DNA of 63,302 nucleotides, counting the filler, from Choristocarpus tenellus KU-1152 (lineage: Eukaryota > Protista > Phaeophyceae), in assembly GCA_964200185.2 (NCBI GenBank). It is 12 parts of 12 records of this genome, joined end to end, with 100 filler letters (N's around TTAATTAATTAA, not from the genome) between each part and the next. Parts side by side here need not be neighbours in the genome. Positions count along the whole stretch, not along the records: positions 9,863 to 15,410 come from CAXNAD020010454.1; 11 more parts are not named here. One strand, written 5' to 3'. The position numbers and the translations under genes are program-made. Numbering within the stretch: the stretch's first letter is position 1; each line of letters begins with the position of its first letter. This document shows positions 8,941-15,550 of the stretch, one piece after another. The notes beneath the pieces are model-generated. The model searched no databases. It was not told where the DNA came from and saw only the letters and a list, made by a program, of their open reading frames with translations.

Positions 8941-10007
8941 AGGGCGTGTGAATCTTGTTTGAATAGATCTTGCTCCCGCCTGCAGAGATTTATTTTCATA
9001 CAAAACTGTGAAAGGATGATAAATCATGTTTGCGGTGGTGGAGTGAAGTAGACGTTCGACTATCACAACTGAAATTTCTAGATTGAGGCCACCTCGTCCG
9101 CGAAAAAACGTTAGAGTCAGATGGTGATTGCTCTTCTGCCGTGAGCTCTCTGAGGGGCAGAGAGCACGCTTTGACTTACTACCAACCACTCCCACCCATT
9201 GATTGATGTATTAGACTCAATAGTGCCAAGTTCTTCGTACTACTGGACATAGCAATTCTCGCTTCCTCCCTGAAGGCCAAATGCATATTCCGCACTATGT
9301 GCTCTACTTTAGTACTTTGGAGTACATAGTACCAAGCATAGCGCATTAACCTTTCAGTGAGCACCTCACACCATTCTCCAGGGTCAGTAGCTACAGTTGC
9401 AAGCACTTCAATCCTTGAGACACATATCTCGTGAGTGAGAGACTCTTTCAAACCCTTACAAGATTGATGAAAGGTGTTTTCATGACCCCTCCCAGGTAGG
9501 ATATTGAACGAGGAGTCCCTGCAACAGTGGTATTTTCTTAGGGGTTGCAGAGGTTTTCCCTTCAGGTCTATAAAAGCTAAGCTAAAAGAGAAGGTAGACT
9601 CTCCTCTATTAAGGGCACTACTTGTCGATACCAGTTGTTTAGCACTTTTTATCGGTTACTCGTGGCTCAAAGTACCTGGGGGAGGGGGGGGGGGGGGGGG
9701 GGGGGGGGCGTCTTTTTTTGGGCAATTTTTTTTTTTTAAAATTTTTGGGGGTTTGTTTGGATNNNNNNNNNNNNNNNNNNNNNNNNNNNNNNNNNNNNNN
9801 NNNNNNTTAATTAATTAANNNNNNNNNNNNNNNNNNNNNNNNNNNNNNNNNNNNNNNNNNNNCCTACTTGCATACCTTGGAGGTCATTAAGGAAGGGAGG
9901 GGGGGGTGGAGTGGGGGCACCAGGGGCGGAAGAATAGGGCTTTTTGTTTGATTTCTTGAGGAAAGCTCGATGTGTGATCACTGCCATGTCTTTCAGAAGG
10001 AGAGCAT

Positions 10008-10175
10008 TACAGTATAGCATAGTTCAGTATAGTACAGTATTGTATAGTATAATTCAGTACAATATAGAATAGTACAGTATAGTTCAGTATAGTAGGTATA
10101 ATACAGTACAATACAGTAGAGTATAGTTCAGTATAGTATAGTATAGTATAGTACATTATAGTACAATATAGTAGG
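10008..10175. repeat. Degenerate (AGTAT/AGTAC)n pentamer microsatellite
   Basis: Directly visible. Confidence 0.9.
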
Positions 10176-10868
10176 TAAAAAAAAAGTACAAAAATTATAT
10201 ATTATATATCTTATTTCTGTGAAAATGTTTCCATTCATAGAGAAATCAACACTATCAAGTTGATTTTAGCGCTTCATCCATAGAAGTAAGGGTGAATGTA
10301 GCACAAGATGAAAAGAGTAGCTTAAAAACTAAAACGGCCGAAACCTGGATACCCTCAGTACTTTAGCTTCCACCTGTTTCAAGACTATTTTTGTTGTTCT
10401 GGTAGATTTTACATGCAAATACAAATTATATATTTCTTGTACCACTATGCCATATCTGTCCTAAAACTTGGACTGTTAAGACCGTTGAATTGGAATAGTG
10501 CAATACTTCTCTTGTTTCTTCCGTCAATACAATCTCCCATGCTACCATACTTTGCTGCCATACTACGGAGCAAGGTCACACAACTCCCTCTTCACTTCTT
10601 TACTCAAGGTTTTCCAAAAATGGGTCTTGCTTCAGTGCTGCCTACACTGTGACGTATATACCATACGTGATGTTGAGTTGTGGGAGACCTTCCGATGCAT
10701 TGCTGCTGCTCAACTGTTTCGCCCCTCACTGTTTCCTCATACATAAAAATAATATATATATATATATATGGTGGTAATGGAGATATAACACTTGTCTGCC
10801 GCTCTTCTAAGCATTAATAAGAAGTGGTGGTGATGTGAGAAATAAGGTGAGGCCGAATAATGGATCAC

Positions 10869-13595
10869 CTGAGAGATGTCATGGTCTGGTGGAAGAAGGC
10901 AGGGGCGGCCCTGATTGCACACACCATGAGTGTCTTGCAGTTGCCTCCTAGTGAATCCTTCAGCAGGTATGTCAGCTTTGAGTTTCGATAAGGAATGAAA
11001 GGCCGTTCCATTGAGGTTGGGGGTGGTGGTAGGACTGATTCTCCGCCCAAGTCTGCTTCCATCTTTTCCCTTGCCACCTTCGTGGCCATTGCCTTGGTTG
11101 CTGCCCTGTGATACTTGGAAAGGGCATTGAGTACATCCCCAAGGAGAGATAGGGACAGGTTGATGTTCTGAGCTTCTGCTAGCGACCTGCCTTCAGCACC
11201 AGACATGGTCACTCGCTCGGATCCTGCAAGATCAATCACCTTTGATCGCGGTAAGGGGAGGCGGGATTGGAAGTTGATTAAGGTAAAGGGCATGATAAAA
11301 AAAGAGTACAGGGCTATCTATTGATGGTGATGAGCATGACAGTTACTGCTAGTGCAGTAAGGTTCTACTTGCAACCCATCGAGACAGATCAGTAAACTTC
11401 TCCCTTTTCAATGACCGTTCATCCTCTGGTCAGCCGCTTCTCACACTTGCATCTCCAATCCTCACCTGAGTGAAAGTATCTTAGAGGGTATGGATTTTGC
11501 CCTGTTTGTCCATTTGGGGTTTGACTTTCCATATTTTTTTTAATGACATTTTCCTACTCCAAAATGTTTTGAGTAGGTAAAATGTATTCGTTATGAAAGG
11601 TGTGTCCGGAACATGGGTATTGACACTTCCTGGCAAACACGATAGCCAAAATTACACCAAAATCGCAACATTGGATTTTGCCTCCCAAATGGACACGGCT
11701 CTACCCTCTAAGATACTATGGCTCACCTGCAGTTTTCCAATGCTTACATACTCTGCCATTGAAGTCCTCCGCTGGTATCCTGATGTCAACCTATCAGTTG
11801 TGACTCCAAGTCCTACCCCTGCTCGCGCCCCTGAACCCAACCCAGTCCCCACGCCTGTCTTCATATCCAGGGTGCACTCTTCGTTGGCTTCAATCTCCAG
11901 AATGAGAATGGCATGACTCCGGCTGCTGCGGTCATTAAGGCTAGTTGCAGCTGTTGTCCTTGCCTGTATCCCTTGTTCAATCAGCTTCATCACTGCCGCA
12001 GCTGATGTGACTGGGACCCTAAGTCCACCACCCTCAACCCTGCTGCCAGTCTTGTTCCTTCCACCTTCCCCTCCGCCCTCAGCAAGGAACACTCCCCTGG
12101 ACGGATGTTCTCGAACCTCTATTTTGCTGGTGTGACGTGCGGGTGCCATTTCTCTTTCTGATTTGCCCCTGTGATGCTTGGCACCCTTATCAAAGGGTTT
12201 GGCATATCATGGGAGTCAAATACAGCAAAAGGATGAAACGAGAAAGGTGATAGGGTGATAGGCTAACCCTCCTTGACTAGTGCTGTCTTTGAGTCAATGT
12301 TAATGTGTACAAAATATGTGCAACTCTGTAAGGTATTTTATGCATCCACAAGGCAGTCGAGATTTCTGCTATTCTTTCTGTGTTGGCTATATGCACTGGT
12401 AACAGAGATTGTAAGTATTTCATCTTAACTGTGTGCTGTATGTAAATGAGGTCTCACTTTATGATGTCAGGACAATGACAAATACGATGTATTGGCAGTC
12501 CACACGCACCCGTTTGGCAGAGGAGGAATCCCCACTCTCACTTGTTCTCTCTCCACCGCCACCACCACTTCCATCACTGTTTTTGCTGTTGGTTTGACCC
12601 CGTCCTTCACGTGATTGTATTTTACTTTTTTCAAGCAGGTTGTAAAACTTGTTGTTGTAGATTTCAACATACCTTCAACATTGGGAAGGAAGAGGTGAAA
12701 TGTTGCAGGAATAAATAGGTGGTGCTCTTTATCCAGGAGGTATAGGGTGAGGAGATGTATGCCCATTCATTGCCTCTTTGATGTGGAGGGTGGACCTAAA
12801 CTAGTATTAGGTGAGACATACTTATGCCCTTTCGGACGATAGAATCGGCTGAAGCCAGGTTGACCAGGGATAACTTGATGCTATGAGTGTGACCGACTCT
12901 TCTCACATAATTTTCTCCAAGCCATGTTCCATTGTTACATATTTATAAATACCTTACCTTTCAAAGTCGAACTCACGTGAGGAAGACCATGAAGGCCCTA
13001 TCTGATCCTGACGCAGCATCGACTGCCAGGCGTTCGAATAGGAGACTCACGGCTTGAGGTATTATCCCAGGCTGTGTATCTGCACCGCTAATTGTATGGG
13101 TTTTTCCAGCACCAGTGCTACCATAACCAAAAACGGTAGTGGTATATCCTGCCAGTGAAATGCACGGGAATTTTTATTCGAGCTGGGTTTGTTCGAGAGA
13201 GGGTGGCGAGAGGGAGAGTTGGTGAACATTGTTAGCCAACCCACCTCCAGCACGGCTTGGAATACTCTCGCAGAGTGACGAGCAAGGTCTCGAATCCTTT
13301 CAGTCGACTCATGAACACAACAATATAGCATGTCGTACTTACCCTCTACCGCAGCATGCACAAGTGGCTTGACTTGTTCAAACACCTCGGCCTGACTTGC
13401 ATCTGTGCCGAAGACTTTGTCGAAGGTAAAATCATGGGCATTATTTCCCTCGACCGAATGACTAGCTGGGGGTAATGGATCGACTATAGTCAGCTTGGTG
13501 TCTTCGACAGATAGTATGCATGACCCAGAAAGGTCTTGCTTGTCAGTGTTCTCCTCCTGAGGTCGAAGTCTAACAATGACCTTGACGGACTCCAT
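10869..13595 (-). CDS. Kinesin motor-domain protein, 5' part (exons 13595-13343, 13148-12977, 12672-12510, 12185-11727, 11239-10869)
   Basis: Motifs [17 protein letters not shown]-loop [17 protein letters not shown], switch I NDRSSRSH, switch II DLAGSER and [22 protein letters not shown]. All introns are GT-AG and in phase. Confidence 0.95.
11468..11724. mobile_element. MITE family 1 copy inserted exactly at a kinesin splice donor, TSD ACCT (AGGT on the gene strand)
   Basis: ACCT|GAGTGAAAGTATCTTAGAGGG...CCTCTAAGATACTATGGCTC|ACCT. Confidence 0.93.
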
Positions 13596-13989
13596 TTTTG
13601 CAGAAGGGTGCGCTAGTAGTCACCTGCATCCCCTCAACTATTCGTTTTTTCGTTGACTTGACCTCGCCAAAACTTGAAATACGCGGGAGATATATTTTGG
13701 GAGTGGGTATCAGAGGTGGCAGATATCCTCTGCACCACCCGTCTATCCCGTGGGAGTAGCTGAAAGATGTCAAATGAGCATGAAGGGTGTCTCCTTGCTG
13801 GAAAGGATTCCTCCTGACGTTTTGGTTGTTGTGATGCAGGTTCCGTTTCGCAAAACGCTCTGTAGCACCCTGAACGATATCATCTTCTTCTGGTAAACAA
13901 TGTTCAACCAGTACTGCATACAATTATACATGTGATCAATATCCGTGCTTGACATTTGACTCTTGAGCATGCCACTAGGGATATCAGCC

Positions 13990-15320
13990 ATGGCTGGTCG
14001 AAAATGGTGGGGAGGATTAGCGGTGAGGCAGGTATACGTGGTCTCAGTTGCTGCCCTGTGCATGTTCTACTGTGCATTCGGCAAGGATGCCAAAGGACCT
14101 CACCCCCATAACGGCATGGTTAAGGTGCGGATTCTGTAGTAGTGTCCAGCACTTAGAGATAGAGACTCCTCTTCTCTACTGCTCAACATGGGAGCAGGAG
14201 AGTGAGGTTAGCGTCATTGCCCACTCACAACCGTCTTCGACCAAACGTTAGGGGTCTGTCCAGACCCTCCCCACTTCTTTCTGTGACTGTCTCTGCCTCT
14301 CGCTCCCTCGTAGCTTGCCCTATCCTTTATATGCCACCATCTCTCGAACCTTTGTGTGCCTGAACTCCATGTGCCTCAGCCGTACCAGCCGGGACCGCCA
14401 TCCTTCACTCTCACCAAACGCCAGCTGTCTGATCTTGAAGAGGGAAAATTGGTAGGTCCGGCATGGTCTATTCACAGAGTTTTGCAAGCTTGAAGAATCT
14501 CGGAAAGCTTCGATTTCGAGTATGTATTCTCCTCAACCTTGAGCTACTCCACGGTCAAGCCTCTCAAGTTTAGAATGACTCCATGACCCCCTTCAGCAGA
14601 TCTTTGCACAACCCATTGATTTTTCCTTATGGAGGTAAGCCTTCCAATTCTCTCCTTGTCCTTCTCTCTCTTTAAGGTAGAGGATATGTTAAAAGGGAAG
14701 AATTCGGAGGATGGTGGAAAGGCCGGCCGTGCACTTGCAGTACAGGATGTAGATGCACCTCCCGAGTATGTATGGGACCGCATCAAGGACTTCAACAACT
14801 ACAAGAACATGGTAAGTGATTAAATGGTTCAGAGAAGGTTGGTTGGGACTGAAATGATGATGAAACAGGTGTAACTGTAACTTCCCTCACTCTTGAATTT
14901 CTGAATGTGCCTTGTTTTGTTAAAAGAGTAAAGACTGGAGTCATTCTTAGTCACGGTACTTGATTACGTCCCACTAAATCGTGCGTTTTGGTTGTGGCAA
15001 TGGCAGTTGGGTGAGGTACTGTAATAGTTTGCACAGAACTTGGAAACAACCTCTGCTATGGTTCCTAAATGAAGCTCACATCAAAAAATGCTCTTACCCC
15101 CAGCCTTGGTGGGTCACTTCCTAAATAAGGGCAATATTTGTGGTACCATTTTTAACACCATGTCCTTCTGTGACAAACTGCAGTTCAAAGGGATTCCCAC
15201 TGCTTTACCCAGCCTCCCCCCCTGAATTACTCTCACTGCCATGCTACAACTGCACTGTGCCTTCTGCAGGTGCCCAAAGTGGTTGAGTGCTACAACTATG
15301 ACACAGAGACCCTTAGAAAT
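13990..15320 (+). CDS. Putative secreted SRPBCC/START-like (polyketide cyclase-fold) protein, 5' exons 13990-14124, 14380-14451, 14677-14811, 15270-15320
   Basis: Spliced peptide MAGRKWWGGLAVRQVYVVSVAALCMFYCAFG...PHPHNGMVK|PYQPGPP...GKL|...GRALAVQDVDAPPEYVWDRIKDFNNYKNM|VPKVVECYNY. The V.AP...VW..I.DF..Y..M.P pattern is SRPBCC-like, and the N-terminus is hydrophobic. Confidence 0.75.
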
Positions 15321-15340
15321 GTGAGTCGTTAACTATCTAT

Positions 15341-15376
<36 letters not shown>

Positions 15377-15550
15377 GCCCCCCCCCCCCCCTCCACTCTC
15401 GTTGCTGCGTNNNNNNNNNNNNNNNNNNNNNNNNNNNNNNNNNNNNNNNNNNNNTTAATTAATTAANNNNNNNNNNNNNNNNNNNNNNNNNNNNNNNNNN
15501 NNNNNNNNNNGGGGCCCGTCTGTCCTTATTCCTTTGGCTTGGTCGAGGTC

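Follow-up and report, generated by a model that had tools for sequence, protein, structure and literature searches.

The systems closest to the one described here are short elements that become introns by drawing splice sites from the place where they insert. In Polarella glacialis, the two splice sites of ILE classes 13 and 14 derive from an AGGH duplication of 4 nt (10.1101/2020.10.14.339549), and in Florenciella both sites are likewise co-opted from the insertion site (10.1101/2022.06.06.494994). The Micromonas element IE1 carries one splice site within itself and gains the other from the duplication (PMC11282704). Introners described to date are mostly enriched in genes and at GC-rich motifs (10.1101/2022.06.06.494994). 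A nested arrangement is found in fungal [D1,2] stwintrons (PMC12403724), in which one GT...AG intron lies on the donor of another that surrounds it, and removal of the inner unit regenerates the outer donor.

Against this background we examined a MITE copy of 257 bp (11468-11724) that lies in an intron of a kinesin gene of Choristocarpus tenellus KU-1152, in the CAXNAD020010454.1 part of the window; by window we mean the whole stretch of DNA analysed, 63,302 nucleotides with filler, and all positions count along it. The kinesin copy shows the same AGGT-duplication geometry as the P. glacialis ILE classes 13 and 14. The evidence assembled below nevertheless makes it probable that we are looking at an ordinary old insertion of a high-copy MITE on an ancient kinesin donor, tolerated because the donor was rebuilt.

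The kinesin motor gene is carried on the minus strand. Its exons were searched one by one, and the translations of three of them match Pfam Kinesin (E = 3.6e-6, 5e-11 and 1e-28); the solved chains closest to the exon at 10869..11239 are KIF18A motors. The limits given for the upstream exon in Table 1 enclose the part supported by its ORF, and the true 5' edge lies further upstream at an uncertain position. With slashes marking actual or candidate splice junctions, the gene (minus) strand at the insertion reads CTGCAG/GTGAGCCATAGTATCTTAGAGGGTA ... TACCCTCTAAGATACTTTCACTCAG/GTGAGGATTGG, while on the plus strand AATCCTC ACCT is followed by the element, GAGTGAAAGTATCTTAGAGGGTA ... TACCCTCTAAGATACTATGGCTC, and then by ACCT GCAGTT. 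Without the element and one TSD copy, the intron would measure 226 nt.

Table 1. Coordinates of the kinesin exons, the intron and the parts of the inserted element, in window positions.
Feature	Position	Strand	Description
Kinesin motor exon, upstream	11727..12149	-	Ends ...SIGKLQ; Pfam Kinesin E=5e-11; orthologues
Intron with element	11240..11726	-	487 nt, phase 0, between GKLQ and VIDLAGSER
Next kinesin exon	10869..11239	-	Pfam Kinesin E=1e-28; starts just past AG 11241-11240
TSD copy, exon side	11725..11728	-	AGGT on gene strand; AG 11728-11727 are the last 2 exon bases; GT 11726-11725, upstream donor, runs on into element GAGCCA
Right TIR	11702..11724	.	Reverse complement GAGCCATAGTATCTTAGAGGGTA
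Imperfect internal palindrome	11556..11580	.	CCTACTCCAAAATGTTTTGAGTAGG; stem in predicted RNA fold
Left TIR	11468..11490	.	GAGTGAAAGTATCTTAGAGGGTA
TSD copy, intron side	11464..11467	-	AGGT on gene strand, ACCT on +; AG 11467-11466, candidate internal acceptor; GT 11465-11464, duplicate donor, leading into old intron GAGGATTGG

The remainder of this part of the window holds a few features of its own. Downstream of the kinesin exons there is a degenerate microsatellite, (AGTAT)n / (AGTACAGTAT)n, at 10011-10173, with approximately 16-33 copies. A plus-strand ORF at 14629-14823 has a weak match to Polyketide_cyc2 (START-like; E = 0.002, below the Pfam cut-off) and may belong, as an exon, to a neighbouring gene that runs divergently. 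The piece carries a long poly-C run at one end (15342-15401) and a complementary G-rich run at the other (9896-9917); these runs may be true homopolymers of the genome or a by-product of the way the piece was cut. A search for a relic of the dinoflagellate spliced leader gave no match.

The element has the anatomy of a MITE: it is short and non-coding, it is bounded by TIRs, this copy has a 4-nt TSD, and many dispersed copies are found with unrelated flanks. A repeat finder places inverted arms of 24 nt, 88% complementary, at 11467-11490 and 11702-11725; the TIR proper is 23 nt long, and its left and right versions agree at 20 of these 23 positions. Two inverted occurrences of the 16-nt TIR core are present where 0.04 would be expected by chance, a result reproduced in none of 200 shuffles. 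Only short ORFs are found within the element, the longest of 51 aa, for which a protein search returned no homologue. As RNA, the element with its TSD is predicted to form a long terminal hairpin (-89.2 kcal/mol, z = -6.2). A known RNA or a tRNA-derived SINE is ruled out, there being no Rfam or tRNA match. Target duplication at TTAA is a feature of piggyBac/Kolobok-type transposons; the TSD of the kinesin copy is ACCT, which does not fit that feature.

The extent of the duplication can be read from the flanks, which share ACCT (4 nt) and nothing else: lengths of 1-3 and 5 mismatch. Because the two flanks, where they meet the element, have only these four bases in common, the target duplication is 4 bp. 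The full direct repeat around the element is longer, 8 nt (CAGGTGAG, gene strand), because the old flank (GAG on one side and C on the other) coincidentally matches the element termini. An initial annotation of this DNA had described CTGCAG/GT...AG on the gene strand and a 257-bp element flanked by duplicated AGGT. The layout is confirmed by direct reading, and for the element the TIRs, the shared ACCT and the ends defined by contigs all agree; the 4-bp TSD also stands, and the one small correction concerns the direct repeat as a whole, which is 8 nt.

The insertion falls exactly on the splice donor, such that the exon ends in CAG, the TSD supplies the GT and the element continues the signal, and a second copy of the signal, the original donor CAG/GTGAGGATTGG (GT 11465-11464), stands 261 nt further downstream. 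The two donors are identical from -3 to +5 (CAG/GTGAG). Neither splice dinucleotide, GT or AG, is carried by the element itself. At its far edge, the candidate acceptor CTTTCACTCAG/G is no worse than the acceptors the gene uses elsewhere (cag/G and aag/G), all of them followed by G. The proposal that TSD GT plus element GAG makes a donor, and the element end plus TSD AG an acceptor, is therefore correct at the level of sequence, where the unit is a formally complete GT...AG intron. Read-through to the downstream donor adds 261 nt and meets an in-frame stop after 25 codons, inside the element. Since the downstream exon is intact and strongly matching (E=1e-28), productive splicing must occur, and because that conserved exon survives while the alternative donor leads to a stop, we infer that the upstream donor (11726-11725) is the one in use. 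It is also possible, judging from the splice signals, that the element and one TSD copy may be removed first, which would regenerate the old donor and make this a case of nested two-step splicing.

The age of the intron was assessed from orthologous sequences. Searching with the upstream-exon ORF returned 13 kinesin fragments at approximately 43-61% identity, and in all five of the orthologue ORFs examined the motif ...SIGKMQ gives way to non-coding (intron) sequence. Orthologous loci, approximately 50% identical and from other samples, were retrieved from an ENA assembly (L001) and from Logan runs (L008 and L009). In all three the intron occurs at the identical position and in phase 0, between GK[LM]Q and [VI]IDLAGSE; the donors in L001, L008 and L009 are CAG/GTTAGG, CAG/GTGAGC and CAG/GTGCGG, and the intron lengths are 281, 650 and 220 nt, respectively. 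No TIR element was found in any of these three orthologous introns. Because the position is common to three element-free orthologous loci, the intron long predates the insertion. The MITE did not create the kinesin intron, and no intron was gained here, so that one of the features by which an introner is recognised is absent from this locus. The initial annotation had itself cautioned that this copy lies at a pre-existing donor and had suggested comparing intron positions among orthologues; the comparison bears the caution out, since position and phase are shared and hence not new.

Elsewhere in the same gene, in-frame stops occur at 12186-12519 (minus strand, approximate limits), a region across which the ORFs of the orthologues stay open all the way from YVEIYNN, past KIEVREH, to GKMQ. 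These stops probably imply a lineage-specific intron (CGG/GTGCGT ... GATAAG/GGTGCC), which could represent a gain in the Choristocarpus lineage or a loss in its relatives. The 6-nt sequence GGGTGC is present at both candidate junctions; the region is single-copy by depth up to 12400, and no TIR was seen in it.

The interval 10900-12400 was compared with two contig sets from the same organism (X1 and X2, both DNA-like) and with a DNA run of another species (X3). Contig pieces matching the element number 19101 in X1 and 13939 in X2, and the summed word depth in X1 rises to approximately 0.66-1.9 million over the element from 15-19 in its flanks. Summed depth is not a copy number, and we therefore read these values only as copy equivalents, on the order of 10^4-10^5, but the family is clearly very abundant. 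The boundaries of the element are also fixed by other copies, whose left loose ends start at 11468 (345 contigs) or 11467 (246) and whose right loose ends lie at 11724 (218 contigs) or 11725 (165). These unrelated loose ends establish 11468 and 11724 as the family boundaries independently of the kinesin copy. Bearing indirectly on the remark in the initial annotation that both termini begin GAGT in other copies, no variant is listed among family contigs for 11468-11492, and one contig has the right end ...GATACTTTGACT. The most variable segment of the family is the internal palindrome, where the indels and skips of X1 and X2 contigs are concentrated.

The flanks of the other copies do not resemble the kinesin site. 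In the summary of contig ends, their consensus reaches an agreement of only 0.33-0.37, with an A/T plurality at almost every position, and no AG/GT or ACCT signal is visible. None of the best-supported X1 rows, each with at least 78 contigs and accompanied by 629 further rows, falls at 11464-11466. It is likely that copies sharing ACCT are a small minority at most. These flank statistics come from a table of contig ends and not from a list of individual copies, and a modest enrichment of AGGT would be compatible with them, but as they stand they suggest a family that has no AGGT preference. The 4-nt AGGH duplication supplying both splice sites is accordingly something that the kinesin copy fits by its sequence and that is not the typical flank of the family in this summary. 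The broader proposal that the family acts as an intron generator is left unsupported, and the evidence at hand tends to count against it, given that flanks of other copies are heterogeneous, have an A/T plurality and in most cases cannot share ACCT.

The kinesin copy is also not a recent arrival. It differs from the depth-weighted family majority at no fewer than 18 of 257 sites (at least 7% diverged), and this divergence indicates that the copy is old. Both of its junctions are spanned by X1 and X2 contigs with not one difference, from which it follows that the insertion is real and present in both samples. No empty-site allele or joint is listed in the X1 and X2 contigs, which drop rare variants. 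Across the family, every CG that the element contains shows C>T and G>A as minority variants, and for the 9863-15410 piece and the element family the observed/expected CpG ratio is 0.46-0.49; the ratio and the variants indicate that CpG sites in this genome decay through methylation. In dozens of X1 and X2 contigs one element is joined head to tail to another, with 11724 followed by 11467 or 11468, or 11726 by 11468, and such end-to-start joints mean that the family also occurs as head-to-tail dimers or arrays.

Outside this organism the family was scarcely encountered. In X3, approximately 1.9 billion letters yielded a single element-matching read, which carried the family-majority variants; either the other species all but lacks the family or the lone read is carry-over within the study. 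A DNA pattern requiring both TIRs had 0 matches in metagenomes. The 19-nt TIR pattern matched at 5 loci in metagenomes and at 1 in a bacterial MAG, none of which proved to be a copy by BLAST, the alignments being chance matches of 19-23 nt and one of 39 nt at 82%. The TIR pattern had 0 matches in viral contigs, and a literature search for the TIR strings found no paper.

The history that best fits these observations would begin with a transposase making a 4-bp staggered cut around the AG/GT of an existing 5' splice site, with repair then duplicating AGGT. The exon-proximal AGGT, joined to the terminal GAG of the element, would have recreated a donor indistinguishable from the old one over the positions compared above. 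Splicing of this upstream donor to the native acceptor (AG 11241-11240) would excise the whole intron, element included, and with the gene still functional the insertion would be tolerated, a matter of survivorship that calls for no specialised intron-making activity. At 10^4-10^5 copies, chance alone should place a few insertions exactly on donors, and only those that rebuild the donor would survive. Two details sit less comfortably with a tolerated insertion: the terminal GAGT fits a strong donor after GT so exactly that the fit could have been selected, and CACTC/AG resembles the kinesin gene's own acceptors. A rival reading is that the family is a true introner, in which an exonic AGGT is hit in either orientation, the TSD provides GT and AG, the TIRs provide GAGT...CACTC, excision is exact and the kinesin copy is incidental. 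We regard this as unlikely. The sequence logic does hold for the kinesin copy, the same principle is documented in P. glacialis ILE classes 13 and 14 and in Florenciella, the strong pairing predicted for the RNA ends would bring the splice sites together, and at 10^4-10^5 copies even rare AGGT hits could give some introns. However, the sole intron open to examination is ancient, the element contributes neither GT nor AG, and the flanks of other copies are heterogeneous and A/T-plurality, not AG/GT, whereas described introners are mostly gene-enriched and found at GC-rich motifs. That the family makes introns at any exonic AGGT, in either orientation, with the kinesin copy itself a nested and possibly two-step-spliced intron, we consider unlikely as well.

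If the two donors, identical as they are from -3 to +5, were in competition, the insertion might instead have a regulatory effect, with use of the downstream donor adding 261 nt and a premature stop, inside the element, to give an unproductive isoform. Transcription reaches the upstream donor first, however, and that donor is sufficient; we judge such an effect very improbable. The 8-nt repeat CAGGTGAG leaves the boundary formally ambiguous within a single copy, and on that ground the inserted unit could be taken for a complete intron (GTGAGC...CACTCAG) that entered an AG/GT proto-splice site without a TSD, as reverse splicing or intron transposition might bring about. Across the family, however, similarity breaks off within the GT and the AG, at 11468 and 11724, in hundreds of A/T-flanked junction contigs, and TIRs and head-to-tail joints are typical of DNA transposons. 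The junction contigs largely refute a TSD-free intron insertion, to which we attach hardly any probability.

Set beside the described systems, a tolerated MITE insertion shares some features with each and departs from all of them. The P. glacialis ILE classes 13 and 14, to which the kinesin copy is likened by description and not by sequence, amount to hundreds of introns at new positions, whereas the kinesin copy sits at an ancient intron and the flanks of other copies are A/T-rich and non-AGGT. Those A/T-rich flanks are the opposite of the GC-rich motif preference of introners in general. Micromonas pusilla IE1 and the Aureococcus introners are likewise short and MITE-like, with TIRs and a TSD that contributes a splice site (PMC11282704; 10.1101/2022.06.06.494994). 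These elements have one splice site of their own and mainly form whole introns in genes, in contrast to the Choristocarpus MITE, which has neither GT nor AG. In stwintrons (PMC12403724), the inner intron splits the donor between nucleotides 1 and 2 and the two-step reaction is obligatory, whereas at the kinesin locus one step suffices. Ordinary intron-resident MITEs are also short and non-coding, carry TIRs and a short TSD, and exist in very many copies, chiefly in non-coding DNA that is rich in A/T; the kinesin copy differs from them in lying precisely on a donor and rebuilding it, which is unusual in a single case and expected by chance in a family of this size. We therefore regard the MITE family as new and its behaviour as of a known kind, the AGGT-type mechanism itself having already been described.

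Were the family nevertheless to make introns, a very large MITE family would join the few cases in which both splice sites come from the TSD; it would be the first AGGH-type introner reported in this lineage, and the organism would be useful for studies of intron gain. As it stands, the locus matters chiefly as a caution: in a family of 10^4-10^5 copies, chance alone should produce a few insertions that look like a "perfect intron". The kinesin locus itself is a clean natural example of a transposon landing on a splice donor and being tolerated because its TSD and first bases rebuild the signal.
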